Shown one piece after another: positions 1,044 to 47,200 of a stretch of 64,000 bases of DNA (positions are counted from its first letter, which is position 1; each line of letters starts with the position of its first letter). The notes under the pieces are model-generated. The model did not search any database. It worked only from the letters and a program-made list of their open reading frames with translations, and was not told the DNA's origin. Position numbers and translations under genes: made by a program. The DNA lies in the IMG/VR virus record IMGVR_UViG_3300020477_000990, positions 124,001 to 188,000 of that record. One strand, 5' to 3'.

Positions 1044-1900
1044 AAGTTAAATAATTTACGATTAACTGAATTATTGTTAATAATTAAATTATTTTTATTA
1101 TATTTTAGTTCATTATTTTTATCTAAGTTAAATGTTTTAGATATAAGATCCCAATCTTCCCAAAATAATTTTTTATTTTTAATTAATTTTATCTTTTCGT
1201 CAGTTGAATTAAACATTTTTCTTGCAGTACCTTTACCAGGAACAATAGGGTTGTCTCCACCTCCTTGATAATATTGATCCCCTAGTAATATTTTTGCATC
1301 AGATTGACTATAATCTCCTTTTAAATCTTCATAAAATGCAATATGATTTATTGTTAAAGGATAAAAATGTAATAATGAATAATCAATTGTTAATTCTTTA
1401 ATAAAATCAATAGCCATTTTGTGATTATAATCTATTTCACCTGTTTTTAATAAGTCTTTTATTATTTCTTTATTCAAATCACACAAAATACCTCTACTAA
1501 TACTTTTCTTATCTTTTCCTTTTCCTAGTATATCCCAATGCTTTCCACCTTCTGGTAGCAATATTTGAGTATGCACTAAAAAGGATAAAAATACTTCAAA
1601 TATATTCTTTCTAATTAATAATATAGTATGATAATACTCTTTTTTTAATTTTCTATCTAGATATGGTAATGCTTTGTAAAAATCAACAGCCATTTGCGGA
1701 CTACTTATAATAACATTATGCTCATCTTTTATTTTAGCTTTTTCATATAGGTTATAATTCGTCAATTTTGATCTATAATAATTTCTCATATTAATAGGCT
1801 TATATCCTCGCGGTGCTTTATATTCAGCTATTAAATCACTACCGTAGGTACTCCCATTGTGACTTAACCCTATAAAAATGATATCTTTATCTTTGCTCAT
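1040..1900 (-). CDS. Putative sulfotransferase-like (Stf0-type) protein
   Basis: N-terminal FIGLSHNGSTY (5'-PSB-like loop) and LIRKNIFEVFLS (3'-PB-like R...S). Confidence 0.45.
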   Translation of the reverse strand: MSKDKDIIFIGLSHNGSTYGSDLIAEYKAPRGYKPINMRNYYRSKLTNYNLYEKAKIKDEHNVIISSPQMAVDFYKALPYLDRKLKKEYYHTILLIRKNIFEVFLSFLVHTQILLPEGGKHWDILGKGKDKKSISRGILCDLNKEIIKDLLKTGEIDYNHKMAIDFIKELTIDYSLLHFYPLTINHIAFYEDLKGDYSQSDAKILLGDQYYQGGGDNPIVPGKGTARKMFNSTDEKIKLIKNKKLFWEDWDLISKTFNLDKNNELKYNKNNLIINNNSVNRKLFNF

Positions 1901-2732: not shown

Positions 2733-2787
2733 AGCACGATTACACTACATGATACACTATACGACATACTAGTGAATAGTAAAAGAA

Positions 2788-3185
2788 TTGTACTATCTGT
2801 GCGTATGAGCACACCCTTGAAAGAAGGGTACCCAAAAAGAGAAACCGCGTCTCGGATCACCGGGGAATCACCACCGAAAAAGTAATTAGTATATGTATAT
2901 CCACGGTCCTCTTAACCGTTAAAAACAGGGTAACCACCATTGATCTATGCTTCCCCATCATGGCCTATATTGTCGCAATTGCGGAGCGGTCTGTCTTTGA
3001 ACAATGACCTTCGGTCATTATCTCCGATCACCCGAAGCACTTATGCTAACGGCTAGTCGCACGTTAGCATGGCGTAGCTTTGGCTGGGTCGTCTTTGATC
3101 AATTGCTCCCTGAATATGTGATCACCATGCTGTATATCGGAGCGACAGCTTCGCGACCTGTTAGCTCTAGGGTGTCGCTAACAGT
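2788..3185 (+). ncRNA. Candidate structured RNA
   Basis: Stems TGTGC/GCACA, ACCCTT/AAGGGT, AATGAC-cUUCGg-TCATT, ATGCTAAC/GTTAGCAT, GGAGC(2983)/GCTCC(3105), TGTTAGC/GCTAACA; the cUUCGg loop favours the + strand. Confidence 0.4.
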
Positions 3186-3218
3186 CAGTCTTAGATAGAT
3201 ATACAGCTATATGGTAGA

Positions 3219-3271
3219 GACCCCGCTGTAAACCATAGGGACCCCGCTGTAACATATACAGACCCCGCTGT
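3219..3271 (+). repeat. Three GACCCCGCTGT direct repeats, exact 21-bp period
   Basis: Copies at 3219, 3240, 3261. Confidence 0.95.
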
Positions 3272-3305
3272 GCGGTCTGATGGATTAGTCAGGAATGTAG
3301 CTGTG

Positions 3306-3414
3306 CCGGGACTAGATCTAGTCATTAGCTCCTGATCTCCAGCTTTAGCTCCGGGACTATATGTTGTGGTGGCCTCGATCTATGCCTCTCATGCGTAGAT
3401 TTATTCCGGGACTA
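3306..3414 (+). repeat. Three CCGGGACTA direct repeats
   Basis: Copies at 3306, 3351, 3406; partial CCGGGAC at 3495. Confidence 0.9.
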
Positions 3415-3445
3415 TATATAGTGGTTTTAATTAGACTAATTTTTA

Positions 3446-3474
3446 TTGACTCATTATCGATAATATGCTATATT
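3446..3474 (+). promoter_or_regulatory. sigma70 promoter with extended -10 inside the non-coding element
   Basis: TTGACT 3446-3451, 17-nt spacer containing palindrome ATTATCGATAAT, TGcTATATT ending 3474. Confidence 0.7.
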
Positions 3475-3645
3475 AAATATACAACATGGGTCGCCCGGGA
3501 CACGTATTCCTTACCGTATGGGGTCGGGCGGTCAAGTCGATCAAGCGTACGATCCGGCGATCAGCGTATGACGAGAAACAATGATGGAGCCCAGAGATAA
3601 TAGTAGCTGTATGACGGGGGACGGTAGGGTGATACAGCTACACCT

Positions 3646-3747
3646 TCAAAGAGGCTCAAAGCACTCAAAGAGCTTCAAAGACACTCAAAGGACTCAAAGG
3701 CGCTCAAAGGGGCTCAAAGGGCCTCAAAGGCGGGGCGAGGTTCAAAG
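3646..3747 (+). repeat. Ten TCAAAG repeats phased at about 10 bp
   Basis: Copies at 3646, 3656, 3665, 3675, 3685, 3694, 3704, 3714, 3724, 3742. Confidence 0.95.
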
Positions 3748-3788
3748 AGGCCAGATGGCCCCTCCGGGGCCTATATTGAGATTTAGTC

Positions 3789-3840
3789 TTGAGATGTTGC
3801 AAAAATACAACACATTTTGAGATGTTGTAGAAATACAACA
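3789..3840 (+). repeat. Two 24-bp direct repeats TTGAGATGTTGyArAAATACAACA, each an internal inverted repeat
   Basis: Copies 3789-3812 and 3817-3840 differ at 2 positions. Confidence 0.9.
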
Positions 3841-4169
3841 GGTGTTGTATAAAAGCCACAAGTTACCGTAACTGCTGTAAACACATTTGGAACACAATTG
3901 GAACAAGATTTCAACACAATTGTTAATAGCTTATTGGCCACAATATGTTGTAGGGTGTGTGATAAACGCGACACAACATCTTGTATGAAAAAAGACTAAT
4001 AATATCAATGGTTTAGCACGGTGAAGCTGTAGCTGTGCTATATGTAGTCAGGACCTGACTAGATATTGTGCCATGGTAAAATGGTCAGAGTTCGGCCCAA
4101 CCTTTGAGTAACAGTCTATTTCTTTCTAAATTTTCTCTGCTCTAGTTAATTTTCGACTGGAGTTAATAT

Positions 4170-4198
4170 TATAATAGCATAGGTTTCTATATTGTCAA
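4170..4198 (-). promoter_or_regulatory. Leftward sigma70 promoter with 12-bp operator, no downstream ORF
   Basis: Minus strand TTGACA-atATAGAAACCTATgc-TATTAT. Confidence 0.7.
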
Positions 4199-4221
4199 GA
4201 GGTTAATTTAAATATTTTTGG

Positions 4222-4249
4222 TTGACACATTGCGTAACCGTGCTACAAT
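4222..4249 (+). promoter_or_regulatory. Early sigma70 promoter
   Basis: TTGACA 4222-4227, 16 nt, TGcTACAAT ending 4249. Confidence 0.75.
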
Positions 4250-4322
4250 AAAGAATGAGCCTGTTGTAATGAATCGATAGGTATACTTAGATGAAGCAGG
4301 CTCATTTAAATAGAAAGGAAAT

Positions 4323-7015: not shown

Positions 7016-7185
7016 TGGCTAAATGGAAAATCCATGTAGACCTAGATGCCGCTAGGGAAGAAGCAGAATATTTAGAGTCTTTAACAATTGAAGCCGATAA
7101 TGAAGATGAAGCCTTAACAAAAGCAGATCAGATAGTTAAGTCAAATATGTATGGTGGACCTTATTATAATGTGGAGGAGGAGTAA
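7015..7185 (+). CDS. Small acidic protein, DpnD/PcfM-like motif (not in ORF track)
   Basis: MAKWKIHVDLDAAREEAEYLESLTIEADNEDEALTKA..., SD AGGAGG, TAATG coupling both sides. Confidence 0.75.
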   Translation: MAKWKIHVDLDAAREEAEYLESLTIEADNEDEALTKADQIVKSNMYGGPYYNVEEE

Positions 7186-7448
7186 TGGCTAATAAAGATA
7201 AATTTTTGCTGAAGCCCAAAAATTTACTAGATAAATTTTTGCTGGATGATGACTCCGGGGTTAATTTAATGGATTTGTCAGTAGAAGAATTAAAGGATTA
7301 CAAAGAAACAATTATTGAAAAGATTGAAAAATATCTTCCAGAACTTTGTGATGATATAGATGAAGTAATAGCAATAAAGAAAGAAGCCGAAGATAATTGG
7401 GATGGATCAAATTATCCAGCAATCAATCCATTAGGAGAAGATGTATAA
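7185..7448 (+). CDS. Acidic hypothetical protein
   Basis: SD GGAGGAG, TAATG coupling. Confidence 0.75.
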   Translation: MANKDKFLLKPKNLLDKFLLDDDSGVNLMDLSVEELKDYKETIIEKIEKYLPELCDDIDEVIAIKKEAEDNWDGSNYPAINPLGEDV

Positions 7449-7717
7449 TGGCTTGGACTCAAGAAGAAGAAGAGAAGTATTTAAAGTCACCTTATAAGAA
7501 ATACAGTATAGGTATACCTTATACAGTATGGGTCGATGTAGATGCAAAGGATCAAGACGAAGCGGTTGACTTGGCTTGTAATGCTGAATTTAGTGTGAAC
7601 TTATATATTGGACAAAAGCAACATAGAAGAGTTCATGTAATTCCGGACGCAGAATTGCAAGAATATGTTGATCCTATGGTATGGTGTGAGGACGATGGGA
7701 CTTATAAACCTACATAA
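7448..7717 (+). CDS. Acidic protein, DpnD/PcfM-like motif
   Basis: VWVDVDAKDQDEAVDLA; start at TAATG junction 7448. Confidence 0.7.
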   Translation: MAWTQEEEEKYLKSPYKKYSIGIPYTVWVDVDAKDQDEAVDLACNAEFSVNLYIGQKQHRRVHVIPDAELQEYVDPMVWCEDDGTYKPT

Positions 7718-7736
7718 ACATTGGGAAAATTAATGG

Positions 7737-7765
7737 TTGACAACATAGAAATCTATGCTATTGTT
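7737..7765 (+). promoter_or_regulatory. Early sigma70 promoter with 12-bp operator
   Basis: TTGACA 7737-7742; ATAGAAATCTAT 7745-7756; TGcTATTGT. Confidence 0.75.
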
Positions 7766-7787
7766 AATAATAACAAGAAAGGAAAAT

Positions 7788-7991
7788 ATGTTTAAAACAT
7801 TTTTTAATATATTAGCAACACTTTTAATTGCCGTTGGTTTAATTATGATGGCGGGTAGTGCTAACGATTGTGATGGCAAGTGTATGGAAACTGCTAATAC
7901 AATTACAGAGATGCTTATGTATGCAGGCATTGGCTTAACTTTTATGATATGCGGAAGTGCAATTTTAATTTCAAATAAGAGGGAGGCGTAA
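7788..7991 (+). CDS. Two-TM membrane protein with a Cys-pair loop
   Basis: SD GAAAGGA; two hydrophobic helices flanking NDCDGKC. Confidence 0.75.
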   Translation: MFKTFFNILATLLIAVGLIMMAGSANDCDGKCMETANTITEMLMYAGIGLTFMICGSAILISNKREA

Positions 7992-13067: not shown

Positions 13068-14126
13068 ATGTCAACATACATTAAAATCGTAGACGGAACA
13101 TACGGAAAGAAGGCCGGGAAACCTTTAAGTGTCAAGGGCACAATCTTTCCTATGCTAAAAGCATTTCAAACAGATAAACAGGGTGGCTTTGTCACAGTCG
13201 ATGCAATGAAGGTTCCAAACTTTCCTGCAAGGACTATTAAAGTAAGATGTGAATCACCTAAGTCATATGAGTTTGTTAATGAATCAGATTTCGATAAAAG
13301 TATTAGACACATTGATGCTAATGTGCCAGGCGAAACTGAATCAGAAGCAATTGATAGAATAAGAGAAAGATTCGATATTCTAGATACTATGACGGAAGCA
13401 ACTATGGAAGGAACGGTAAGAGCACTTATTGTTAGTGGCCCTCCAGGAGTTGGTAAATCATACGGTGTTGAAGAGAAGTTAAATGAAGCAAACATCTTCG
13501 ATAAAATATCTGAAAGCAAACCTAAATGGGAAGTTGTCCGTGGGGCAATGAGTGCTATTGGTTTGTATCAAAAGTTGTTTAAGTTTAGTAATAGAGGGCA
13601 CATATTAGTTTTAGATGATTGTGACTCTATCCTATTCGATGACGTTGCACTTAACATACTTAAGGCGGCGTTAGATAGTAGTAAGAAAAGATACATATCA
13701 TGGAATACAGAATCAAGAGTATTGGCCAACGAAGGTGTGCCAGATAGGTTTGAATTCCAAGGTAGTGTTATCCTAATTACAAACATTAAGTTCAACTATG
13801 TTAAGTCCAAGAAGTTGCAAGATCACTTACAAGCGGTAATGTCAAGATGCCATTACTTAGACTTAACAATGGATAGTGTGCGTGATAGGATGTTGCGTTG
13901 CAAACAGATAATAGCAGATGGTGAAATGTTATCCCCATATAAATTTAGTGCTGAACAAGAGCAAAAACTAATAGACTTTATATGGGAGCATAGAGATTCA
14001 CTAAATGAGATTAGTTTAAGAATGGTGACTAAGATTGCTGACTTAATGAAGATGAGTAATGATTGGGAGAAATTAGCCAGAGCAACTTGTATGAAGCGAG
14101 CAATGGCTCAGAATAGAGTTGCTTAA
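13068..14126 (+). CDS. P-loop AAA-type ATPase
   Basis: Walker A GPPGVGKS, Walker B LVLDDCD, sensor ILITN, AVMSRC. Confidence 0.85.
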   Translation: MSTYIKIVDGTYGKKAGKPLSVKGTIFPMLKAFQTDKQGGFVTVDAMKVPNFPARTIKVRCESPKSYEFVNESDFDKSIRHIDANVPGETESEAIDRIRERFDILDTMTEATMEGTVRALIVSGPPGVGKSYGVEEKLNEANIFDKISESKPKWEVVRGAMSAIGLYQKLFKFSNRGHILVLDDCDSILFDDVALNILKAALDSSKKRYISWNTESRVLANEGVPDRFEFQGSVILITNIKFNYVKSKKLQDHLQAVMSRCHYLDLTMDSVRDRMLRCKQIIADGEMLSPYKFSAEQEQKLIDFIWEHRDSLNEISLRMVTKIADLMKMSNDWEKLARATCMKRAMAQNRVA

Positions 14127-14652: not shown

Positions 14653-14940
14653 ATGAGTAAACATAAGGTAATAGATCTAATTAAGCAAGTTAAGTCACTA
14701 ACTACTAGAGATGACTTAATTGCTATATCTAATGCGGCACACACTAGATTAGATTGGGTTAATAGATGTAAGGCACAGGACTTTACTAGAGGTGATAGAG
14801 TATCATTTACATCTAGTAGATCAGGCCGTACAATGAAGGGTACTGTAAGGAAGGTTAATATCAAGTATGTTATAGTAGACATAGATGGTACTAGCATGAG
14901 CTACAGAGTACCTGGTTCATATTTGAAATTAGTAGCATAA
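14653..14940 (+). CDS. SH3/KOW-like small protein
   Basis: FTRGDRVSF...GTVRKVNIKYVIV; SD AAGGAGG. Confidence 0.7.
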   Translation: MSKHKVIDLIKQVKSLTTRDDLIAISNAAHTRLDWVNRCKAQDFTRGDRVSFTSSRSGRTMKGTVRKVNIKYVIVDIDGTSMSYRVPGSYLKLVA

Positions 14941-14980
14941 GAGCTATACAGTAGTACTGTTGTATAGAGCTACAATACTA

Positions 14981-15004
14981 AAGGCCCTACGGGGCCTTTT
15001 TTTA
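14981..15004 (+). terminator. Intrinsic terminator closing the early module
   Basis: AGGCCC-tacg-GGGCCT then long T-tract. Confidence 0.85.
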
Positions 15005-16165
15005 TGAAATTTATTTCGTAAAAGAAAAATAAAAAAATAAAATAATTTTCCCCTGGCCGACCATGTAAATATTCGCACCCTAAAATCGAGGAGACCTAGG
15101 CTATGACGGACGTTATATTTTTTGGGTAAAAAAGGAGAGGTGTAATATAAAGGGCGGTGCTAAAAAAATTGCAGTAAAAAATTTTTAGTTAAACATATAG
15201 AAATCTGTAATGTAGTATTTTTAATAGAAAACAACCCATATATCCAATATACCCCGCGGCAAGAACAATGATGAACTCAACAGAAACGACAGTAGATCAA
15301 CTGTTATAAAGATTGTTGTCCCCCATTCTTATGAAGCAGTAAAGAACTGTGAACTCACAATGAGCTACACAATGAATCCACGATGAAGCATTGTGATGAT
15401 GCTTAAAAATTAAAATGCTATAAAAAATAGCATTTATAACAATACCTCGCGGGAGAGGTATAACTTAATGGATCACTATGACGCTAAAATGGAAAACTGT
15501 GGTAACTGTTAAGGGCTCAACAATTATAGGTTTCTAACCTACAAATATCATGTAGCCAAATATAAACCACCATACAAGTGCTATTAAAATCAACACTATT
15601 GTTGCTATGTCATCACGCATAACACTATTTAAGCAGAGGCATTAACAAACAGGACACACGGGCTTTAAAATAGGATTAAAGGCTCTTATATACGTAGTAC
15701 TAGCTATGCTTATGAACTGTACGCAAATATGCGTTAGGCCTGTTTGTAGCATACTGCTACGGTGAAGTGATTAGTCTACGGAGTGTAATAAACTGTAACA
15801 ATCTTAATAGCTATTAGGCATGGTGGGGCATGGTGGTTGCTGTAGTTAAGAGTCTTCTGCGAGAGCTGGAAAAGGAACGTAAGTTCCGTTCCACTAGCGA
15901 GCAGATATATCCGTATGAACGAGCTATATTATATCCTTTTAATAAAGTTTATTAGATTTTGTAATTTTGGTCGCAAATACAAGCAAATACAATTATAACC
16001 GCCGCACATACAAACTATACAATATAAACCCCACATACACCGCAAATACAATATAATACTATATACCCCGCACATACAAAAAATCGCAAATACAAACTAT
16101 GCAATATAAACACCCCTACAAAAAAATTTTCGCATACACATAAAATACAATATACGCCCCTTGCG
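15005..16165. other. Second large non-coding element (candidate terminus / pac / origin)
   Basis: No ORF of 60 aa or more in about 1.2 kb; many short inverted repeats; repeat array at right end. Confidence 0.7.
15973..16150 (+). repeat. GCA(A/C)ATACAA repeat array, strongly A/C-skewed
   Basis: Exact copies at 15973, 15983, 16004, 16042, 16070, 16086 plus degenerate copies. Confidence 0.9.
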
Positions 16166-16176
16166 TAAATACTATT

Positions 16177-16503
16177 ATGGAACTGTTGATTAAAGCAATT
16201 ATAGGTGGTATCATTATAGCTACAGTTAGTACTATCGGAGGACGTTATCCTACTGTAGGAGCATTTGTATTAGGTATACCATTAGCAACATTTGTTTCAT
16301 TTATCTTTATGCACTATGCAGGTGTTGACATACAAACATTTAAACTCATTAGTATACAGACTGTATACTTTGTTCTAGTCAGCTTATTGTTCTTTCCGGT
16401 GTTCATATATATGATATCCACTCATGGCTTTTGGATATCAATGCTAGTTTCAGTACTAATTACAGGTACCTTAATGATGTGTTTATTCAAGTATATACAA
16501 TAA
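16177..16503 (+). CDS. DUF3147/GlpM-like 4-TM membrane protein
   Basis: LLIKAIIGGIIIATVSTIGGRYPTVGAFVLGIPL pattern. Confidence 0.7.
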   Translation: MELLIKAIIGGIIIATVSTIGGRYPTVGAFVLGIPLATFVSFIFMHYAGVDIQTFKLISIQTVYFVLVSLLFFPVFIYMISTHGFWISMLVSVLITGTLMMCLFKYIQ

Positions 16504-17367: not shown

Positions 17368-17409
17368 TTGACAACATATTACAACTATAATACAATAATA
17401 TGATAAGTA
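17368..17409 (+). promoter_or_regulatory. Dual promoter for rplL: sigma70 plus TAAGTA late-type box
   Basis: TTGACA 17368-17373, 17 nt, TACAAT 17391-17396; TAAGTA 17404-17409. Confidence 0.6.
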
Positions 17410-20239: not shown

Positions 20240-20448
20240 TTAACCCGGCTATCGTAGACATATTCACGTCCACGCATTTCACAAATCCAAACACTTCCAC
20301 GATACTGTTTAAATACCATTTTAATAGATTTTTCTAGGATTATTGTTTTATCACCATTTGGATGATTTTTAATTACTACTCCATTAGCAGTAACGCCATT
20401 ATCTGTACAGGTAATTTTTACTATTTCTTCTTCTTGTTCTCTATACAT
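20236..20448 (-). CDS. Hypothetical protein
   Basis: Promoter TTGACA upstream near 20485-20480. Confidence 0.7.
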   Translation of the reverse strand: MYREQEEEIVKITCTDNGVTANGVVIKNHPNGDKTIILEKSIKMVFKQYRGSVWICEMRGREYVYDSRVK

Positions 20449-21013: not shown

Positions 21014-22195
21014 TTAATCCCTTTTGTAATATTTATATTCAGTAATGTCAGCTAGTTCTGGAAACACGTCTTCAAAGTGTTCATTTCGAAATTTATCTAC
21101 ACGTAGCGTCCAGTCAATAAATTTCATCCAATCATGATATCCATAATCATCTTGATTCATATAATCAATAAATGTTTGTATATCTTTATTTTTATGTTCT
21201 AGTAATTTATTAGAAATAGATCTTTTAGCATCGTTAGGTAAACATTTAATATTATAATGCATTGGATAGTGCAAACTATTTAGATATACACTTATACCAA
21301 ATTCTTTAGCCCATGCTAAAAATTCGGGTATGTATAGCACGTTAAAGACGTTGATTGTATGACATATACCAACAGTAAATTTTTTACTTTGTTTATTTTT
21401 AAATTCATTAATAACGTGTAATGCATTTTTCCATTTAGCAGGATGCCTTTGGTATTCAAATTGCTTACCAATACCATCTATAGAAAATTGAATGTCAACA
21501 GACTTAAAGTGGGGCCATATACTTTGCAATGCTTCATTAGGTAATTGTGTTCCATTTGTATTATAATGAATTCCTATGTTTTTAGCATAACCTTGTTCAA
21601 CGCAAAATTGTAATAACTCAAATTGTTCTTTAATTAAAAAAGGTTCTCCTCCAGTAAAGTCGATATATTCTAATGTTGGTAATAATTCTTTAAGCTCACG
21701 CCAAAACTTTTTGTTAGTTTCTGGCCATCCATGCCTAGTGTGTTTTTCTATAGTGTTATCTTCTTTATCATAATGTTGTTGTTCAGCTATCCATTTACTA
21801 GAAGAATGTGTTCCACATATACGACATTTTAAATTACAAATGTTTCCTAGTTTTAAATCAAGATATTTTAACTTAGGTTCCTGTATTATTTCCTTTGTAA
21901 AATGATGTTGATATTTTTTATTATCTCTAATTCTTTTTGAAACTTTACCACTTGCTTCTTCACTCCAGCATTTAGCACACCCACTAGGTTTTTTACCATT
22001 TAGGAATTCTTTTCTTAGGTTTCTATAATAATCACTATTCCAAGCGTCATCAAATGTGTTATTAGATAAATTGAATGGTTGCTTGTTTTTATCAGTCATG
22101 TTATTATTATACATACAGCAAGGTTTAATCCACCCTGCGGCTGTGGACTCTAATGAGATCCATGGTAATATACAAAATGATTTAGGTACGTGCAT
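21014..22195 (-). CDS. Radical SAM protein with N-terminal twitch/SPASM-like Cys cluster
   Basis: CNLKCRIC; FCILPW...PCC...CAKCW; FTGGEP; YNTNG; start 22195 is 5 nt after TAAATA. Confidence 0.9.
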   Translation of the reverse strand: MHVPKSFCILPWISLESTAAGWIKPCCMYNNNMTDKNKQPFNLSNNTFDDAWNSDYYRNLRKEFLNGKKPSGCAKCWSEEASGKVSKRIRDNKKYQHHFTKEIIQEPKLKYLDLKLGNICNLKCRICGTHSSSKWIAEQQHYDKEDNTIEKHTRHGWPETNKKFWRELKELLPTLEYIDFTGGEPFLIKEQFELLQFCVEQGYAKNIGIHYNTNGTQLPNEALQSIWPHFKSVDIQFSIDGIGKQFEYQRHPAKWKNALHVINEFKNKQSKKFTVGICHTINVFNVLYIPEFLAWAKEFGISVYLNSLHYPMHYNIKCLPNDAKRSISNKLLEHKNKDIQTFIDYMNQDDYGYHDWMKFIDWTLRVDKFRNEHFEDVFPELADITEYKYYKRD

Positions 22196-22227
22196 AACTA
22201 TATTTAACATAGCACAAAAAGGATAAA

Positions 22228-22629: not shown

Positions 22630-23434
22630 AATAGCTTGTATTGGTTGCAGTTGGACTGAAGGTATTGCAGTAGATGGTCAACTTATGGACCACCAAGATA
22701 CATATCCATATCTATTATCTAAATACTTAAGAGAAAATGCAAAAAATAATGTTATGTATAATGCTGGAAGGTCGGCGGCAGGAACAGAGTATTATCATTT
22801 AGTTACTGATTATCTAATTAAAAAATTTAATCCAGATATCTTTGTTATACAATTTACAACACATGATCGTGGAATATTACCGTTAGATCCAATTGATGAA
22901 AACGAGAAAAGATTAAATTTTGGTTATGATACTATTGATAACACTTATTGTAAAATTTGGGATAACAATAAAAGTATAATGCATTTAAGTCCTGGAATGG
23001 GTGCAAGTGCCAGTAAGCATAGTTCAGAAACACAATGGGATGGTTTAATAGATAAAATTTATAACGAACGAATAAAAGGAAAAATGGCTCCAGAAGTTGA
23101 ATTAGATACATTAAAAAAATATATTGCGTTGTGGTGGGAGCAATCAAAAAATTCAGATATACAAAAATATTTTTATTATTCTCATATGTATAGTTTGCTT
23201 GATTATTTAGAAGAATTAGGAAAGCAAGTAATTCCTTTTCATTGGATGAGATATAAACCAGAATTTAGAACTAAACTTTTTGAATTGAGACCATATCCAT
23301 CTATAGAAGGATTTTTAGGTAATAAACGTTTTAAAGATTTAACTCACGATAACGGATTTCATTTTGGTGTAGAAGGACACACTACGATAGTTCAGGAACT
23401 TTTAGGTCCTGCAATTCAGGAAATAATTCAATAG
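22619..23434 (+). CDS. SGNH/GDSL-like protein
   Basis: CIGCSWTEG, NAGRSAAG, DNGFH. Confidence 0.7.
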   Translation: MPTKIACIGCSWTEGIAVDGQLMDHQDTYPYLLSKYLRENAKNNVMYNAGRSAAGTEYYHLVTDYLIKKFNPDIFVIQFTTHDRGILPLDPIDENEKRLNFGYDTIDNTYCKIWDNNKSIMHLSPGMGASASKHSSETQWDGLIDKIYNERIKGKMAPEVELDTLKKYIALWWEQSKNSDIQKYFYYSHMYSLLDYLEELGKQVIPFHWMRYKPEFRTKLFELRPYPSIEGFLGNKRFKDLTHDNGFHFGVEGHTTIVQELLGPAIQEIIQ

Positions 23435-24611
23435 CATTTTCATTACGTAATTTATCAACCATATTAGTTCTTTCCCAAAACTTTGGAATAAGATGTGATG
23501 AATCTTTTTCATACATAAAGTGAATTAATTTATCATAACGTTTTTCTTTATTGTGTGTATACTTGTCAAACCATTCTTGTTCTTGAACGTATCTTTCTTC
23601 TAAACGTTTTTTCATTTCCATTGGAAGTATTTGTATAGAAAGTTCTTCTGGTACAAACAACGGATTAATCAAACTGCCACCAACAGCGTCAACCCAACCT
23701 TTTTGTATCCATTCATGATGAAAGTCTGGTACATGGAAACTATTATATACATTTAAACAAGTTGCAAGGAACACATATACATCTGGACAAATATCAAACA
23801 TACGTTTTCTATTTTCTTCAACTTGTTCCCATGATTGTCCTTTACGTAAGTATTCTCCACGTTTACCCATGCCATCTAACGAAGCACCTATTTTAACAGA
23901 TTCAAAACGATTCCATATTTCCATAACGTCTAATTTTTTAAATACCATTTGTGAAAAGTTTGTGTTGTACTTTAATCTTACGTGATACATTTTACGTTCA
24001 TCAAGTTTTTTTAGAATTCTATAATGCTCTTCCATAATTAATGGTTCACCACCTGCAAAGTATATTTCTTCTAAGCCGTCCATATATGGTTCAACTTTTT
24101 TCCAAAATGTTTCTTCGTCTTTATAAGGTCTTATAATTTTAGGCTGATCCAATGGGCCATATAATTTTACATTATCTTCATACCAACTTGATGATAAGTC
24201 TGGTCCACAAGTTCTACATTTAAAATTACACAAATTTGAAAATCTAAAATCAATATAAGGTAAGTTAATTTTATCAACTGTACCATCTTCTTTAGTGGTA
24301 CCAATCTTATCAAAATGATTTTCAAATGCTTCGTTGGCCCAAGTTCTTGTTGTATTCAATCCACTTGACTCCATGGAATAACAACGAGTACATTCTTTTG
24401 TTGGTTTATCTTTTAACATTGCTACACGCATTTTCTTTAACTTATCTGAATTCCAAATTTCTTCAAATGATTGATCTTTTAAGTTACCAAGTATCTCATT
24501 CATAGGAGCCATACAACAAGGTAACACTCTACCATCTGGCCATGAGTGTAAATGTGTCCAAGGTAACATACAAAATCGTTTTGATTTTTTTAATGCGTAA
24601 TCTTTATCCAT
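23382..24611 (-). CDS. Radical SAM protein with N-terminal twitch/SPASM-like Cys cluster
   Basis: CNFKCRTC; FCMLPW...PCC...CTRC; FAGGEP. Confidence 0.9.
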   Translation of the reverse strand: MDKDYALKKSKRFCMLPWTHLHSWPDGRVLPCCMAPMNEILGNLKDQSFEEIWNSDKLKKMRVAMLKDKPTKECTRCYSMESSGLNTTRTWANEAFENHFDKIGTTKEDGTVDKINLPYIDFRFSNLCNFKCRTCGPDLSSSWYEDNVKLYGPLDQPKIIRPYKDEETFWKKVEPYMDGLEEIYFAGGEPLIMEEHYRILKKLDERKMYHVRLKYNTNFSQMVFKKLDVMEIWNRFESVKIGASLDGMGKRGEYLRKGQSWEQVEENRKRMFDICPDVYVFLATCLNVYNSFHVPDFHHEWIQKGWVDAVGGSLINPLFVPEELSIQILPMEMKKRLEERYVQEQEWFDKYTHNKEKRYDKLIHFMYEKDSSHLIPKFWERTNMVDKLRNENAIELFPELQDLKVPELS

Positions 24612-38296: not shown

Positions 38297-41200
38297 ATGG
38301 CTGAGCAATTTGTTGCATCAAAACAATTACCAGTAGTTTTACAATCAACAAAGTTAAAAAACTTTTTTGATTCTACAGTTGACCAATGGTTTAAAAATGA
38401 AGACAATGAATTCACTCATGGATTTGTTGGAAGACGTGAAGGTAGAATTTTTGAACCAAAAAAAGATGCCTACTTAGGTGAACCGTCAGTTGATAGATTT
38501 AATTATCAACTTGAACCTTCGGTTGTAGTTAGAGATAATACTACACAAGGAATTTCATATCAAACTACATACGATGACTTTGTTAATAAATTAAGATTTG
38601 ATGGCGGCCAAATTCTAAATCATAAAAAATTATTTGAAGAAGATTATTATTCTTTTGCTCCACCTATTGACATTGATAAATTTTTAAACTATGCTAATTA
38701 TTATTGGTATCCAACTAAAGATGATTTGTCAACAGAAACAAGTGGAGTATTTCCAAGTTTACCAGCAATTGTAGTTGACGGGTCTGGTGCTACACCTATT
38801 GATCCAGCAACAGATATTATTGGAAAGCAAACATATACAGCACCAGATGCCACGGTGTTTACAAATGGTTTACAAATAAAATTTGGTCAATCAGTTACTA
38901 ATGATGCATATAAATTTAGACATACAATTACTGCAATAAATTTAAATGGCGGTGGATCTCAGTATGCAGTAAATGATAAAATTATAGTTTCAACTGTTAC
39001 TATTGGACACGTTACAAGTATTAATGCAGGGGGAACAATCACAGGAGTAGAATTAACAAATCCAGTTCTTGGTGATGGTGTTACTCCAACAGCGGTAACA
39101 ATCACAACTGCAAGTGGTAATGGTGCATTATTAACTGTTACTACATCACAAACTGATATTACTTACATAATTGAAGGTGTAGGAACAGAAATTAAATTAA
39201 TTGATATAAAAGATTTAAGGAACTTAAATGGACTAACAACTTCGTCAAAAGATTATCTAACAATGCAACGAGGTTGTAAAGATGGTAACATTTGGTCAAA
39301 AACAAACGGATGGGTACATAAAAATACATTAGACAACTATCCTAGTGTAACAACTACAACAGAAGAACAACACCTATGGGATACAGAAGGATGGGCAGGT
39401 CTTCAAACTTGGGATAGTATAACAGTATCGTCTACAACTGCATTTACAAAAACAACCGGTAGAAGAGCTACAAGACCAATTATTGAATTTAATAGTAATA
39501 TGGAATTATACGATTATGGAAAAAATCATATACTTGATGTTACAGTTATTGAAGATACATTAACAAAAACACAAATAGAATCTTATGCTAATATAACTAT
39601 TGATGGTAGGCAAATTCAAAATAGAGATACTATATTATTTCCAAGTGCGGCCAGCCAAGATGATTATGTAGCTTGGGATGGAAACTTGTGGGATCATGAT
39701 ACTGACTCAGATATATCAACAGGTGGCGGTGGACAAACTGGTGGTGATTTAGGTTGGGACGTATCTAGTTCAGCTTTTACAATTGAAGGATCTATTTGGC
39801 AAGTATCTGGTGTAGGAACAGCTCTAACACTTACACAGGTTATTACTAGTGTAAATGAAAATGATAAAGTTTATATTGATAAAGGTACAAAATATGGTAG
39901 TACTGAATGGTACTATGATGGATACAATTGGAATCAAGCACAATTAAAATCTAAAGTAAATATTGCACCATTGTTTAATTTATTTGATAATAATAAAGTT
40001 ATATTAAATGATACAGGAATATATCCATCGTCAACGTTTACAGGTTCAAAAGTATTTGGCTATAAAGTTGGTTCAGGAACCAACGATGCTGAATTAGGAT
40101 TTCCACTATCATATGTGTCTGGTAGTGGTCAAAGTGATATTGAGTTTTGTAACTATCTTAATGTCGATTCATACACATATAATACCTCAACTGCGATATC
40201 AGGATACAAGTTTTATAAGCAATTCTTGTATCCTGAAACTATTGCTAAAACTACAAACTATGAAGTAAATATAAATCCTAGTCAAAGAAATACAGCAAAC
40301 AATGTATTTTATATAAATGGTGAAGAAAGCCCAATATTGATTTTACAAAGAGGAGACACATATAATTTTAAATTTAGTTCTCCAGAAAGTGGAAGTACAG
40401 GTTACACAGGAGTAAATCATCCATTTTATATTTCAACAGGAACTCCTTGGTCATCGGGAACATATACTGGTGAATATACAACTGGTGTAACAGGATCTAG
40501 AGCATACTATGGTGGTGCTTATAGTACATTAGAATTTATAGTTCCGTCAAATGCTCCAGATACATTGTACTATCATTCTGCTACAAGTAATAATCCTGTT
40601 AAATTAGTTATAGTTGATAATCCTATTACTAAAATTAATGAAGCTACAGAAACATTTTATAGAAATGAATGGAACAAAAATTTAGGAAGTAAAAAATTAA
40701 AACAACGTTTAGTTCAAGAACATACAGTTTCAAATACAAATTTAACTACTAAACCAACACTAGAAGTTATACCAACATCTATTATAGATATGGAAGTATA
40801 TAAAAATGGAATTAGACAAAAGTTTGGTACAGATTATACTACAACTGCAAGTGTTATAATTAACTTTACAACTGCATTAGTTGAAAATGATTTTATTAAA
40901 ATTTATTACGAGACAAATGATAATACTCCAATTCGTCAAGTAAACTATTTTGAAATACCAAAGAACCTTGAATCAAATGCTTCAAATGAAGAAGTTGTTT
41001 CAGGAACATATTCAGAATTTTTCCAACACTTTGAATCTATAGTTCAAAACCAAATTGGGTTTACTGGTGATGTAAGTGGAGCAAATAATTATCGCGATAC
41101 TGAAAAAGATTTAGGAAAAGGTAAAGTTATTTTACAACATGATGGTTCACTAATGAAAGTAATGGCATTTGCTAATAATGATGACCTGGATATTATATCA

Positions 41201-44200
41201 TCAATAAGATATGTAAAAAATAGATATCAAGAGTTTCAATTAAAATTTTTAAATGCTGTAAATAAAATTCAAGTATCACAAGATGCTTCTTTGTTAACAA
41301 CTTCACAAATTGTTGATAAAGCAATTAAAAATATTACTATAGATAAAATTGCAACTGATCCATTTACATATTCATTTATGATGGCTAGTGGTGATAGATA
41401 TACTTCAGAATCTCATACTATTACAACAACTAATTATACTTGGGGAAATACAAACACATTCTTACAAAGTAGTGATACACAAGAAGTATTTAATCAAGAG
41501 CCTGGCTTAACAATTGCATCAGCATATGATCCAAAAAATGATTATGATAGTAAAGCATTATACGTTTATAAAAATAATGTATTAATGACATATAATCATG
41601 ATTATATTGTAAGTTATTCTTCATCTGGAACAAAAATTATCTTTATAGGATATGCGGCAAATAAACCAAAAGTTAATGATGTAATTTCAATTAGATATTA
41701 TACAACAATTCAACCAACTTGGATACCACCTACTCCAGCAAAACTAGGAGCGGCAAAAGTTTACCAACCGGTTGAAATATCTGATACTATAACATATTCA
41801 AGTGGAACTAGAAACTTTATACAATGTCATGATGGGTCATTTGTTTTAAAATATAATGATTTAAGAGATACTGCATTATTAGAATTAGAAAAAAGAATTT
41901 ATAACACAATCAATAGAAGATTTACTTCTAGGGATTATGTTCCATTATTAGAAATTAATCAAAAACAACCAAACTATTTTAATTCAACTAGTTGGTCTAG
42001 AAATGATATTATTAATTTAATGCGTCCAATATTTACAAGATGGGCATCAGAAAATGCATTAAACTATCATGAGAATACTGGTTATAATAATGTTCTAACA
42101 TTAACAGGAGTTTCTGGTACATTTAAAGTTGGAGAATCTGTTTCTGGTGCAAGTTCTAAAGCAAAAGGTGTAATTACAAAAATTGCAAGTAATGTAATAA
42201 CTATAAACCAAGTTATTGATAGTTTCCAACTTAATGAAAAAATAACTGGTGCAACAAGTGGTGCAGAAGGTACAACAGATCCAAATGGTGGTATTACTAT
42301 TGATTGGAAAGTAATGAATTACTCTTCATTAAAAGATCCAAATGGAAATAGTTTACCAGGACACTGGCGTGGTATGTATCGTTGGTTCTATGGAACAGAT
42401 AGACCACATACTCATCCATGGGAAATGTTAGGCTTTGCACAAAAACCAATTTGGTGGGATAATTATTATTCTTGGACGGCATCGTCGACAAGAGCAAAAT
42501 TAATAAGTGATGTTGAACAAGGTATTATTAGATCAGGCTTACGTGAAAACTATACTGATAAATCATATCTTAACGCAAATAATGTTTATAAAAAACCAAA
42601 CTTTGCGTCATATGTTCCGGTTGATAATACTGGAAAACTATTAAGTCCAAAAGAAATAGGAATTATTTCAGATAATCCTACAGAATATAATTCACAACTT
42701 GATTGGAAATTTGGAGATGGTGCTCCAGTTGAAAATGCATTTGTTGTTTCTCCGGTATATCAATATGCAATACAAAAAATATTATATTTGACAGCACCAG
42801 GTTTATATGTTGACTTGCTTTGGAATTCAAATGATATATTAAAATCATCAGCTGATGCAACTCAAATTATTGACTCTGTAAGTGGTAAAAGACCTAACAA
42901 TAAAAACTATTATGTCCATAGAGAAGTAGATGCTAATAGTATAACATATAACAGAGCTGGAGTACAAAACTTTTTAGTTGAGTATTTAAATTATGTAGGT
43001 AAGTCAGTTACAGATTCATTTGGTAATGTAATTAGAAACCTACAAACAAATTTATCATATCGTTGTGCAGGGTTTATAGACTCATCAACACTTAAAATTG
43101 AATCACAAGCATATGACTCAGTAAGTAATTCAACTAGCATTGTAATTCCAACAGAAGATATTAATATATCATTACATACAGGTGGAAGCATTGATGAAGT
43201 ATCATATAGTGGTTTTATTGTTCAGGTAGTTGAGCAAGGATATAAGATTTTTGGATACGATATAGTACATCCATACTTTAATGTACTTAGACCAATGATT
43301 TCAGGTAGATCAAAAAAACTTAGAATTGGTGGAAAAGAAGTTTCTCCAGTTTCTTATAAACCTGGAACAACGTATCATACAGATGAAATTGTTAAACATG
43401 AAGACAAATATTATCAAAGCATCACTACTCAAGTAACATTAACAACTGATACTAATCCAGATTTACAAAAATGGAAAGTGCTTAAAGTTTTACCAACAGT
43501 AGGTGGAACAGAAGTAGACCACTATTATGATTTTGATGAATCTAATGTATATCAAATTGATTATGGAACTGTATATAAAACTAGACAACAAGTTTATGAT
43601 GCAATAGTAGGATATGGAAAATATTTAGAATTAGTTGGATGGGACTTTAGTGAGTTTAATGTTGATATTGGAGAAAATAAAAATTGGGATTATAGTGCCA
43701 AAGAATTTTTATTTTGGAGTTTAGGAAAATGGGAAAAAGGAAATTATGTTACATTAAGTCCTAGTGCTGATAAATTAAAATTTATACCAGCTTCAGGTGT
43801 TGTCCAAAGTATTAAAGATATTAATAATGGTGTATATAGTGCATTAAACAAAGAAGGTTTTGGACTAGATTCAAAACAACTAGATGTTATACGTGATGAT
43901 GACATGGTAACAATATCACAAAAAGATGGAATTGGAATTTATGGATTAAGATTATCAGTTAAAGAAACTGAGCATATGATTACATTAGAAAACAAAACTA
44001 TCTTTAATGATACAATTTATAATACAATATTAGCACAAAGACAGCCACGTGTAAAAATTAATACAACTAGAACATTAGGATGGCATGGTAAACTTGAAGC
44101 AGATGGTTATATTATAAGTGGAACGTCATTGCTTAATAACTTTGAAAAATCAGTAACTGATTCTGGAAAATATTATGATATAGAATCTTCTCTTGTAGCT

Positions 44201-47200
44201 ACTAATTTTAGAGATTCAGCTATGCACTTAATTGGATACCAAGAAAGAAATTATTTAACTAATTTACAAATTAGTAAAACAAATCAAGTTAAGTTTTATC
44301 AAGGAATGATAAAACAAAAAGGTACACAAAATAGTATTGATAGATTATTAAGATCAACAACTGTAAGTACTGATCAAACATTTGATACATATGAAGAATG
44401 GGCATTTAAAGTTGGTGAATTTGGCTCAACAGCTTTTGATCAAAAAATTGAATTAAGATTAAGAGCAAACGAAGTTGTTAGTGATCCACAAACATTTGAG
44501 TTTTTATTACCATCAGATGCATCAACAACTTCAGGCTATGATAGTCCAACTGATGATGTAATTACAATTGATATTGATGATACAGTACGTTGGTTGAAAA
44601 AACCTAAAGGTGAAAAAACGTTAGCTAATTTATGGCCAGTAGTGTCTACAGTTAATACAGTAGTTCCTACATCAGGTTATGTACATTATGATGATCCAAC
44701 TTATAGAGCATTGAATTCAAATGCACTTGCTAACGTTTATTCATCAGAAACTTCAAATATAGCAATTGGGTCAACAACTTGGGTAGCAAAAGATGATGTA
44801 GCTGGAAGAGATTGGAATGCATATAAATTATATGATACCGGAGATACTATTGATAACGTAGTATCAAATGGTGATGCCAATACTGCAATGAAAGTTACAG
44901 TATCTGGTACAGGCTCAAGTATTGGAGTAGCAAAAGATTTAATTATACATAAAACATATGACGGTGATGGAACACTTGTTATGGATCCTACTAGTTGGGG
45001 CACACACAAAATAACATTATCAACTGCAACGCCAACGGCACCTACAATTACAATTCCATTTTCTGATGTAGCAGGTAGTGGTGCAGAAATGGCAGTAGGG
45101 AATATTAATGGAACGGTATCAACAGTAACAGTTACAGCAGGTGGTGATGGCTTTGCTGTAGGAGATGTAATTTCATTCTCAGGCAGTAATGGAGCAGGTG
45201 GACAAATGACTGTTAATAAAGTTGCCGGCGGAGCAGGTGCTACAGCATCGGCAGTTATAGCAGATACTTTCCCAATTACTTCAATACAAGTTTTAGAACA
45301 AGGTACAGGTTACAGTTCTGCAACTGTTAATATTTCAGGTGGTGGGGGTTCTGGTGCTACTGCAACAGCAACTATTGCCGGCGGTAAAATTACTGCTATT
45401 ACATTAACTGGTGCAGGTTCAGGATATACATATCAGCCTACGATTACAATTACAGGTGATGGAGATGACGCAACTGCTTTTGCTACACTTGGATCAAAAG
45501 CAGATGGACAAATTACATCAATTACTGTTAGCGGAGGCGGAACTGGTTATACAGCAACACCAACAGTTAAAATTACAGACGCTTCTGGTACAGGTGCAAC
45601 TGCAACGGCAGTTATGTCAGCTGGAGCGGTTGCAAGTGTTACAATAACTAATTCAGGTTCAGGATATACAGCACCAACAATTTCATTTACTGGCCCATTA
45701 AGTGGTGCAACTACAGGATCAGAACTAACACTTAATAATGGTGGAGATAATTATGCAGAAGCACCAACGGCATATTCAGTAGTTGATTCTTCAGGCACAA
45801 CAAAAACATCCGGAGTACATTATACACCAGCAACATTTACATATACAGGTGATGGTGCTAGTGGAGTATTTGGTGAAATAAAAGATATTACAATTACAGC
45901 AGGTGGTTCAAATTACCAATCACCAAGTATTAAAATTATTAATGCATCAGGAACAACAGTACATACATTAACAACACCAACTAACATTACACTTACATCA
46001 GGATCTATTACTGCGGTAACAGTTCCAACTGGAGCATGGAATAAAGGATTTAGTGCAGGAGTAATAAGTACTGCAACTGGAAAAATAACAGTTACAGATA
46101 CTAAAGCAAATCATACAGTTAACTTGTCTCCGTCATTAGCTAAAGTACACGCATTAACATCATTAACAGCAAACGTAACTACAGCATTTGATGGGACACC
46201 ATCTGTAACATTAGAAAAATCAGAAGACAATGGAGCATCATGGAGTGCATTATCTACTGCCGCTGTTGATTTAACTACCGTTGCTTCAGCAAACGTTAAT
46301 GTTACAGGAACAATAACTGACAATGCAAACGCAATTGTTAGAGCAAGTATTTCAGTTTCAACAGGAACAACTGGAAATGTTTCTTTATCATTAAATTATA
46401 CTAAAAAAGAATACGCAATAACTAAAAATGGTAATGCTGAATATATTTCAACTGCTGATAATACAACAATTAATTCATCTGGTATTAAATTATTAGATTG
46501 GAAAGATGTTAGATTAAACAATGCGTTAGCAACTGATAAAGCACACGTTGTAACTAGTACAGCAACAACACTTACAAATTTCTTAACAGGAACAGGTTTA
46601 AGCAATAGTGTTTGGACAGAAGGTGCTCTTGTTTGGTTAGATGATGACTTTACTGGTAAGTGGGGAGTATATAGATATACTGCCAATGCAACAATAGTTT
46701 CAAGTTATAATAATATACGTGGAAGTGAACCTGCAAGTTTTTCAGCGGCAGGTGGTACATGGATTTTACATAGTGGAGTAGATTACAGTAACACTTCACA
46801 AACTACTACATCATATTTTGCAAAAACAAAACGTAGACAAAAAGATAGAATAGATACAAAACAATTTAATAAAACGGTTATGTATGATGATAGAAGTCAT
46901 CAAGTTGATTTAAGTATGAATATATTTGATCCATTAAAAGGAATTTTACCTGCATCTGCAGATAGAGAAATCTCATACAAGTCAGAGTTAGATCCTGCAA
47001 TATATAATAATCATAGTGATACTACTTTAATTAGTACAAGTAATCCATGGAAGGATGACTATGTTGGAAAAGTTTGGTGGGATCAATCAACGGCAAGATT
47101 TATTGAATATGAAAGTCATGATAATGATTATAGAAGAACACATTGGGGTCGTTTGTTTGATGGAGCGTCAATTGACGTTTATGAGTGGGTTAAATCAACT

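Follow-up and report, generated by a model that had tools for sequence, protein, structure and literature searches.

The 1236-nt gap at positions 14941-16176 is most likely the gene for a previously undescribed non-coding RNA of roughly 1.1 kb, carried by uncultured marine T4-like phages. The gap was analyzed within a window of 64,000 nucleotides (positions 124,001 to 188,000 of the IMG/VR record IMGVR_UViG_3300020477_000990, 328,149 bp in full). The predicted RNA consists of a folded core followed by a tail of short A/C-rich repeats that appears to be kept unfolded. Its function can only be inferred, and its transcription is supported only weakly. We put the probability of an RNA gene with a functional single-stranded tail at roughly 0.55.

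Sequence features of the intergenic region

The region contains no ORF of 60 aa or more, and by a crude ORF map it is the largest ORF-free gap of the whole record. The first-pass annotation described it as a 1.2 kb non-coding element of serial short hairpins ending in an A/C-skewed array, and this observation was confirmed. GCAMATACAA starts at 15973, 15983, 16004, 16042, 16070 and 16086. There were 7 matches in the window against 0.63 expected, and 0 of 100 shuffles reached this number. Only 5 further copies occur in the rest of the 328 kb. All ten G in 15973-16150 sit in a GCA context, so the claim of almost no G outside the motif is right. The tandem GGCATGGTGG is present at 15818-15837. 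The inverted repeats AAATGCTAT/ATAGCATTT (15413-15436) and ATACCTC/GAGGTAT (15442-15461) are also present. ACGCA/TGCGT and GTAGCA/TGCTAC exist but are kept only in the nearest relative. GGAACG/CGTTCC is better read as GGAAC-GUAA-GUUCC (15874-15887), a GNRA hairpin whose stem covaries.

Two details of that annotation held only in part. It reported two operator copies. The palindrome which we assumed to be this operator, TGTTGTA-N-TACAAC, matches exactly only at 3823-3840, and the element carries only a degenerate copy at 14958-14976. It also placed the element exactly at the switch from sigma70-driven to TAAATA-driven genes. Seven consensus TTGACA promoters do lie upstream, and TAAATA sits 5 nt before the ATG at 16177, but a consensus sigma70 promoter recurs at 17368-17396.

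The upstream sigma70-driven gene block is closed by an intrinsic terminator at 14980-15006 (+), with an 8 bp GC-rich stem, a 4 nt loop and U7. It was found by a terminator scan and is kept in all 9 relatives with 2 compensatory pairs. A small conserved hairpin (UAUGAAA/UUUCGUA) follows at 15003-15020 (+), with 7 pairs, 2 of them with compensatory changes (AA..UU to CU..AG). It could be read-through RNA, a transcript 5' end or a DNA feature. On the other side, the T4-type late-promoter core TAAATA lies at 16166-16171 (+) and belongs to the next gene, not to the RNA. In this genome, 65 of 102 ATAAATA lie within 60 nt upstream of ORF starts. The core is kept at this place in four close relatives and in the homologous locus L248, is degenerate in locus L185, and is replaced by TTGACA/TATATT-type promoters in other clades. 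The downstream gene (16177-16503, +) encodes a 108 aa hydrophobic protein with no family match and is not part of the element.

Conservation of the element

The element is one conserved unit, found at 26 loci in marine and aquatic metagenomes across at least four clades. The earlier annotation held that absence or lack of constraint in close relatives, with no terminus or origin signal, would refute it; homologues lie at the same place in relatives, and the element is constrained. An nhmmer search located the element at the syntenic place in relatives whose neighbouring AAA+ protein is 82-93% identical (E down to 1e-280). It was also found in clades at 61-67% protein identity, which are linked to each other and to the window's clade. 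The element has the same orientation as its neighbours. The flanking genes differ between clades. An exact 15-mer scan of viral contigs gave mostly chance hits, and filtering kept 4 further loci, 2 of them new records. A 17-mer scan gave 2 true and 3 chance hits.

No match was found to any of the 4227 Rfam 15 families, including GOLLD, ROOL, OLE, HEARO, IMES, group I and II introns, RNase P, tmRNA and 6S. There was no hit at gathering scores in the whole window. With E up to 5 on the loci L001 and L003, only a chance 20.6-bit Atu_C8 hit was obtained (E 4.4, gathering score 50), at 14930-15013 across the upstream stop codon and terminator. Searches for tRNA and tmRNA found nothing. Blastn and megablast of three family members against 50,697 phage records returned no GenBank phage DNA match. 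The gapped anchor pattern was scanned in 596 Gb of prokaryote genomes and gave at least 120 hits. None of the first 120 was similar to the family by nhmmer, so no host or prophage copy was found among them. The gene psbA, used to test for a cyanophage, was absent. RegA gave no hit, but the control gave none either, so this is uninformative.

Predicted structure

The family signature is the 5' anchor CGACCRTGT, which is present exactly once in each of the 26 loci of all clades. In the window it is CGACCATGT at 15058-15066 (+), inside the block CCTGGCCGACCATGTA that is invariant in the window's clade. Only 1 + 1 copies occur in the whole 328 kb genome. In the window's clade the anchor can pair with the first CAUGGUGG copy, at a fixed distance from the 3' core. 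The target position was the same in all 8 sequences of the clade, but the energy beat shuffled anchors only in subclade A (z -1.5 to -2.9), and the pairing partner was not consistent in the distant clades.

The folded core spans 15048-15925 (+), about 0.9 kb. Consensus folding gave 93 pairs, 18 of them with compensatory changes. The alignment-fold z was -4.4 and -4.9 in the central parts, and more negative on + than on - in five of the six core windows. The single-sequence MFE was -217.6 kcal/mol (z -2.25), and the consensus energy was -35.7 on the + strand against -27.0 on the - strand. The covariation rests on 8-11 related sequences per clade. A global 20-sequence alignment across clades was too noisy for consensus folding.

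At 15160-15211 (+) lies an invariant A-rich island, CUAAAAAAAUUGCAGUAAAAAA, with an invariant 7 bp helix AUUGCAG/CUGUAAU (15168-15174 with 15205-15211). A related island, AAAAAUUACGCAGUAAAAA, occurs in the distant clades. This 5' domain showed no local-fold signal (z +0.7). The two adjacent hairpins at 15413-15461 (+) fold in all 9 sequences with different stem sequences and are kept in all nine close relatives, with 2 compensatory pairs in the second hairpin. "Serial short hairpins" understates the architecture, because consensus folding also predicts long-range helices. The arm ACCAC at 15566-15570 (+) is predicted to pair with GUGGU at 15833-15837, in the second GGCATGGTGG copy, with an AU to GC compensatory change, two C-G to U-G changes and no unpaired cell. 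A further predicted helix, 15255-15259 with 15857-15861, is invariant and so carries no covariation evidence. Each copy of the tandem GGCAUGGUGG x2 (15818-15837, +) is predicted to pair with a different distant segment, the 5' anchor and 15566-15570.

The 3' core motif at 15857-15903 (+) is shared by all clades: a stem CUG/CAG enclosing GAGC...GCGA(A/G). Here it carries the inserted hairpin GGAAC-GUAA-GUUCC (15874-15887), with an invariant GNRA loop on the + strand. In this domain 99.6% of cells were paired, 0 of 500 shuffles reached that, and 2 pairs showed double changes. In clade C the stem is CCU/AGG, a compensatory change. A covariance model of the 3' domain found only the window's clade.

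The tail at 15970-16150 (+) holds the six exact GCAMATACAA units plus degenerate ones (consensus CNMAUACAMA; tail sequences include CUAAUACACAUACAAA). Its MFE was -4.5 kcal/mol over 196 nt (z +2.0), and 198 of 200 shuffles folded at least as well. No consensus fold was found on the + strand, but -31.5 was obtained on the - strand. A tail with the same core motif was present in all 16 members that extend far enough, with 6-16 units over 180-480 nt, although the flanks share no DNA identity between clades. In the window's clade the tail is more conserved than the core. Over 14 members, (AN)x5 occurs 208 times against 53 expected and UACA 145 times against 29.5, while ACA is enriched about two-fold. 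The units are irregularly spaced, by 6, 9-11, 15-22, 25-30 and 44-45 nt, differently in every clade, and G depletion extends through the spacers.

Transcription and candidate partners

Two metatranscriptome runs of one sample hold a 152 nt contig on 15825-15974. This is contig-level evidence of undetermined strand and ends, and because neighbouring genes are covered alike, DNA carry-over cannot be excluded. No promoter was found, and in the window's clade a strong terminator lies 50 nt upstream. A late promoter at the anchor was considered, but TAAATA is not kept there in relatives. The RNA may be co-transcribed with the upstream sigma70 genes, or start at a weak TAWTTT element 7-17 nt before the anchor.

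The most concrete candidate partner is an Hfq homologue encoded by the phage itself, at 7144-7350 of the genome record G000 (67.5 bits). It keeps the distal-face residues F25, G29, V30 and K31 (the A-rich RNA side), while two proximal-face residues (the U-binding side) are replaced: F42 is N and H57 is N. A second homologue lies in the clade D record that also carries the element. The link is circumstantial. The gene lies 131 kb away, and the classic Gram-negative distal-face motifs are depleted in the tails (AAnAAnAA 6 against 25.9 expected; (ARN)x4 2 against 8.7). The 55%-complete clade C record has the element but no Hfq hit. Three contigs with the Hfq lack the element, but they are only 11-23% complete, so this is uninformative. 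Protein X, which follows the element in three clades, has no Pfam or PHROG family, and its confident predicted model (pLDDT 85) had no significant PDB fold match.

Discussion

We believe that the gap holds a gene for a large non-coding RNA read from the + strand. The analysis itself establishes the conserved unit of about 1.1 kb beginning at the anchor CGACCRUGU, the core with covarying local hairpins, predicted long-range helices, one of them covarying, and an invariant GUAA tetraloop, and the nearly G-free tail that folds worse than its own shuffles. What these parts do is inference. The core would be a compact scaffold, and may itself bind a partner or self-assemble. The tail would be kept single-stranded so that several copies of an RNA-binding protein could load onto the repeated (A-pyrimidine)n motifs, and the RNA would then act as a multivalent platform or sponge during infection. 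A functional structured RNA is likely, the tail as a protein-loading platform is tentative, and Hfq as the partner is doubtful. The interpretation in the first-pass annotation was partly supported: the element is real and constrained, and non-coding transcription, which it had proposed to look for, is the best reading, but no signal of a terminus was found, and none of an origin in GC skew beyond what gene orientation explains.

The main rival, which we consider unlikely, is a replication origin of the T4 oriE or ColE1 kind. An untranslated transcript would prime or open DNA, the repeats would be iterons for an initiator, and the G-free strand would be a non-foldable displaced strand for helicase loading. 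T4 oriE combines an early-promoter dependence with a cluster of direct repeats, and active T4 origins lie near switches of the transcribed strand (PMC3016281). The present element likewise lies in a T4-like genome and has a cluster of short direct repeats beside an untranslated region, a putative dependence on a non-late promoter and a position near a strand switch, 2.5 kb before the one at about 18630. It is the largest intergenic gap of the genome, and its repeats are conserved across clades. However, the T4 repeats are evenly spaced 12-mers, whereas the spacing here is neither even nor helically phased. The strand-specific G depletion fits a single-strand function, and a 0.9 kb core with a GNRA loop and long-range helices is more than a primer needs. 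The cumulative GC skew follows gene orientation, with its local turn about 2.5 kb downstream at the strand switch. Neighbouring genes encode a lyase, a cell-wall hydrolase, a membrane protein and an AAA+ ATPase, not replication proteins. In favour of this rival, the jumbo T4-related Pseudomonas phage PA5oct has a putative lncRNA of 619 nt annotated from RNA-seq (ncRNA004, MK797984.1 246116-246734), followed by repeats, in a large intergenic region about 2 kb upstream of its homologue of the window's AAA+ gene (47% identity). Against it, no similarity to that region was detected (nhmmer, E up to 10). It has its own consensus promoter and terminator, and its repeats are AT-rich 23-mers, not CNMAUACAMA.

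Less likely still, the tail of the same RNA could be a decoy substrate for an ACA/UACA-specific endoribonuclease toxin of the host, soaking up an abortive-infection nuclease. MazF-type toxins cut ACA or UACA in single-stranded RNA, UACA is enriched about five-fold in the tails, and the sites are predicted to be single-stranded. But the conserved unit is longer than UACA, no toxin or host was identified, and a cleavable decoy does not explain the large folded core. An ordinary regulatory spacer, made of the terminator, a Rho loading zone and the next gene's promoter, is improbable. The tail is G-poor, untranslated and unstructured like a rut site, but YC dinucleotides, which Rho prefers, are strongly depleted (126 against 262 expected, z -12.8), and about 900 nt with invariant islands and compensatory changes are conserved across clades whose flanking genes differ. 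A packaging site or genome terminus, implied by the checks proposed in the first-pass annotation and favoured only by the size and repeats of the region, is very unlikely, because the phage has a T4-type baseplate and late promoters and T4-like phages package by headful, the record's 75 bp end repeat lies about 139 kb away, and DNA contigs of two independent runs cross the tail and its junctions (15688-16328 in one; 15051-15574 and 15505-16274 in the other). Hidden or decayed coding sequence is equally unlikely: short ORFs of 32-48 aa exist on both strands and the anchor contains ATG-TAA or ATG-TGA, or a GTG-led ORF of 9-13 codons in some clades, but no ORF is conserved, substitutions are compensatory within stems, indels of 1-2 nt are common between close relatives, no Shine-Dalgarno sequence precedes the anchor, and the genome is 93% coding under table 11, which indicates no alternative code. 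A self-splicing intron is not supported, because the flanking ORFs are complete, unrelated and different between clades, nor is a CRISPR or ToxI-like array, because there is no fixed period and the neighbours are unrelated genes.

Among known systems, the GOLLD and ROOL RNAs (PMC12286853) are also non-coding, several hundred to about a thousand nucleotides long, rich in helices, carried partly by phages and prophages, found largely through metagenomes and of unknown function. The present element does not match their models and has no tRNA neighbours, and a long unstructured repeat tail is not known from those RNAs. Protein-sponge RNAs such as CrcZ/CrcY for Hfq and CsrB/RsmZ for CsrA keep many copies of a short motif accessible in one RNA. 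Many copies of one motif predicted to be single-stranded are also found here, with an Hfq homologue in the same genome. However, the motif is an (A-pyrimidine)n run, the CrcZ-type motif is depleted, GGA is absent, and the putative sponge part is fused to a 0.9 kb folded core. The T4 gene 32 mRNA operator follows the same logic, a pseudoknot followed by an unstructured A/U-rich stretch that gp32 coats cooperatively. It differs in scale (about 40 nt against 180-480 nt), and the present element is not a leader of a gene and has specific repeated motifs rather than mere lack of structure.

A more speculative and improbable possibility is a new kind of phage ribonucleoprotein. The ornate RNA would carry on its tail a row of rings of the phage's own Hfq, and the core would self-assemble or dock to a host machine. 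Abundant marine T4-like phages would use this particle to take over host RNA metabolism or to organise replication.

New large structured RNAs are rare finds, and the few known ones (GOLLD, ROOL and OLE) turned out to form unexpected RNA-only assemblies. The present element is carried by a widespread lineage of uncultured marine and aquatic T4-like phages, seen in runs of 11 studies, and is the largest non-coding feature of a 328 kb genome. In the reading preferred here, it joins two design principles in one molecule, a compact fold and a tail kept unfolded that carries a specific repeated motif. If the origin reading is right instead, it points to the first origin architecture for this group. 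Together with a phage-encoded Hfq, the predicted RNA gives a testable entry into RNA-based host takeover in ocean phages.

Genome context of the element

The window corresponds to bases 124001-188000 of the IMG/VR virus record, which is 328,149 bp long with a 75 bp end repeat and a G+C content of about 31%. The phage is T4-like. It has a T4-type baseplate wedge protein, and ATAAATA behaves as a T4-type late promoter: of 102 genomic copies, 65 lie within 60 nt upstream of ORF starts, where about 4% would be expected. The phage has no psbA. Its relatives come from marine and other aquatic metagenomes. At window 38297-50257 (+), a 3986 aa virion structural protein (phrog_10938) lies next to a 1316 aa baseplate wedge protein. 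At least 13 radical-SAM paralogues are scattered through the genome, counted as tblastn hits to one query (phrog_14086), for example at window 21014-22210 (-), 23382-24611 (-) and 57682-59088 (+).

Window 14941-16176 contains no ORF of 60 aa or more and is the largest ORF-free gap of the genome. The observation made in the first-pass annotation was confirmed. The six GCAMATACAA copies are real, as 0 of 100 shuffles reached the count and only five more copies occur in 328 kb. All G in the array sit in a GCA context. The inverted repeats and the tandem GGCATGGTGG that had been listed were present in their places. Two side claims held only in part. The annotation had reported two operator copies, but the palindrome that we took to be this operator matches exactly only in the other non-coding region, at 3823-3840. 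It had also placed the element exactly at the switch from sigma70-driven to TAAATA-driven genes. The upstream block does carry seven consensus TTGACA promoters, and the next gene has TAAATA 5 nt before its ATG, but a consensus sigma70 promoter returns at 17368-17396. The interpretation offered with the observation was partly supported.

The other non-coding region, window 2733-4322, is an ORF-free stretch of 1.6 kb with 45% G+C in a 31% genome. It holds three GACCCCGCTGTAA copies (3221-3270), about ten tandem YTCAAAGR units of period 10-11 (3636-3750), and the palindrome TGTTGTAGAAATACAACA (3823-3840). It has no Rfam match. It is probably the "first" element of the first-pass annotation.

Conservation of the element

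The neighbouring AAA+ gene (13068-14126) was used to retrieve relatives of the phage. The same kind of element lies at the corresponding place in each of them. In phages whose neighbour protein is 82-93% identical, nhmmer aligned nearly the whole 1.2 kb (E down to 1e-280). In clades at 61-67% identity, the elements were recognisable among themselves (E 1e-10 to 1e-156), and one link back to the window's clade was found (locus L003 to locus L195, E 8e-9). All 26 loci have the anchor CGACCRTGT exactly once. All share a 3' motif, in which a short stem encloses GAGC...GCGA(A/G) and is followed by CCGU. All 16 members whose sequence extends far enough end in a G-poor run of 6-16 units with the core [AC]AUACA and the consensus CNMAUACAMA.

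After the tail, each clade has a different gene with its own promoter. This promoter is of the TTGACA/TATATT type in most clades and of the TAAATA late type in the window's clade and in the member at locus L248. The tail is therefore not the promoter of the next gene, and the unit ends before it. In three clades, a small beta-rich protein (65-79 aa, invariant CTD...GxExVY) directly follows the element with its own sigma70 promoter (L229 5531-5743, L003 6254-6475, and L002 13820-14056). The copy in the window lies 4 kb away on the other strand, at 20254-20448 (-). This protein has no family, and its predicted model (pLDDT 85) has no fold match.

Evidence for a folded RNA on the + strand

Consensus folding of nine sequences gave 93 pairs, 18 of which showed compensatory double changes. 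Column-shuffle tests gave z values of -4.4 and -4.9 for the central parts and -2.8 for the 3' domain, and the values were more negative on the + strand than on the - strand in five of the six core windows. The two hairpins recorded in the first-pass annotation (15413-15436 and 15442-15461) fold in all nine sequences with different stem sequences. The whole core folds to -217.6 kcal/mol (z -2.25). However, each clade offers only 8-11 related sequences, and the 5' domain (15048-15270) shows invariant sequence islands but no local fold signal. The 3' domain was re-aligned by a covariance model. In that alignment, 99.6% of cells pair, 0 of 500 shuffles reached this value, and slid controls paired at 30-50%. 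The 3' domain holds an invariant GUAA tetraloop on a covarying stem (GGAAC/GUUCC against UGCAC/GUGUA).

Consensus folding also predicts long-range helices. ACCAC (15566-15570) pairs with GUGGU in the second GGCAUGGUGG copy, with an AU to GC change. CGCGG (15255-15259) pairs with CUGCG (15857-15861), but both sides are invariant, so this helix rests on prediction without covariation. In the window's clade, the 5' anchor can pair with the first GGCAUGGUGG copy, whereas its partner is not consistent in the distant clades.

The G-poor tail

The tail folds to only -4.5 kcal/mol over 196 nt, and 198 of 200 dinucleotide shuffles fold at least as well. Its complement would fold well. In the window's clade, the sequence of the tail is more conserved than that of the core. 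Motifs were counted over 14 members and compared with mononucleotide shuffles. The (A-N)x5 runs occurred 208 times against 53 expected, UACA 145 times against 29.5, AAnAAnAA 6 times against 25.9, and YC dinucleotides 126 times against 262. The spacing between units is irregular and differs between clades. These figures speak against evenly spaced double-strand iterons, a Rho loading zone, and a CrcZ-type Hfq sponge. They fit a strand selected to stay single and to display a specific short motif many times.

A candidate protein partner

The same genome (record G000) encodes an Hfq homologue of 68 aa (PF17209, 67.5 bits) at 7144-7350, outside the window (1483-1689 of locus L265). Its best solved relative is chain 6gwk_A, Caulobacter Hfq. 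The distal-face contact residues F25, G29, V30, and K31 are kept, while proximal F42 and H57 are replaced (N and N). A second copy lies in G003, the clade D record that also bears the element, and has S and D at those places. Relatives occur on four other viral contigs, and PHROGs holds no family for it. In both phages with the Hfq gene, the gene next to it encodes a histone H1-like Hc1-domain protein (PF07432, 64.9 bits; L265 1925-2158, that is, G000 about 7586-7819, and L266 1116-1304), and the pair appears to be conserved. Gram-positive Hfq proteins bind (purine-linker)n runs on the distal face, which is the pattern of the tail. We consider this a lead and not a result, as the gene is 131 kb from the element and one 55%-complete record has the element without an Hfq hit.

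Expression and promoters

Two metatranscriptome runs of one sample hold a 152 nt contig on 15825-15974, and they also hold contigs on neighbouring genes. This shows presence in an RNA library, but does not show strand, ends, or abundance. No promoter was found for the element. In the window's clade, a strong terminator lies just upstream. In the other clades examined (loci L003, L005, and L002), the upstream ORF ends only 24-45 nt before the anchor. By our reading, a TAWTTT element lies 7-17 nt before the anchor in the four sequences compared.

Alternative explanations

The main alternative is an origin similar to T4 oriE. T4 oriE has direct repeats and depends on an early promoter, and T4 origins tend to lie near strand switches (PMC3016281). 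PA5oct, a jumbo relative, has an RNA-seq-annotated lncRNA of 619 nt near its homologue of the window's AAA+ gene. This lncRNA has a consensus sigma70 promoter and an intrinsic terminator, and it is followed by an AT-rich kilobase with two copies of TCATTTTGTGATTTTAATTTAAA. The region (locus L264, MK797984.1 246116-247789) looks like a candidate origin or regulatory region and is analogous in position to the element studied here, but shows no sequence similarity to this family. The irregular spacing, the strand-specific composition, the elaborate RNA-type conservation, the lack of a skew signal, and the non-replicative neighbours stand against an origin. The two readings are not mutually exclusive.

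A packaging terminus has no support, and neither does hidden coding sequence. The invariant anchor does contain a start-stop pair at window 15063-15068 and homologous positions (ATG TAA, or ATG TGA in clade D), or a GTG-led ORF of 9-13 codons in other clades, but no Shine-Dalgarno sequence precedes it and it is probably incidental.

A proposed new family of large phage RNAs

No Rfam family, no GenBank phage, and no prokaryote genome contig tested holds the element, and literature searches found no description of such an RNA. The conserved unit, the compensatory changes in its core, and the G-poor, poorly folding tail are shown by the sequence comparison, while transcription from the + strand and selection of the tail to stay single are inferred, and binding by the phage Hfq homologue is only a lead. 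We do not place the element in any known family, and we regard it as a new family of large phage RNAs with an unusual two-part design.
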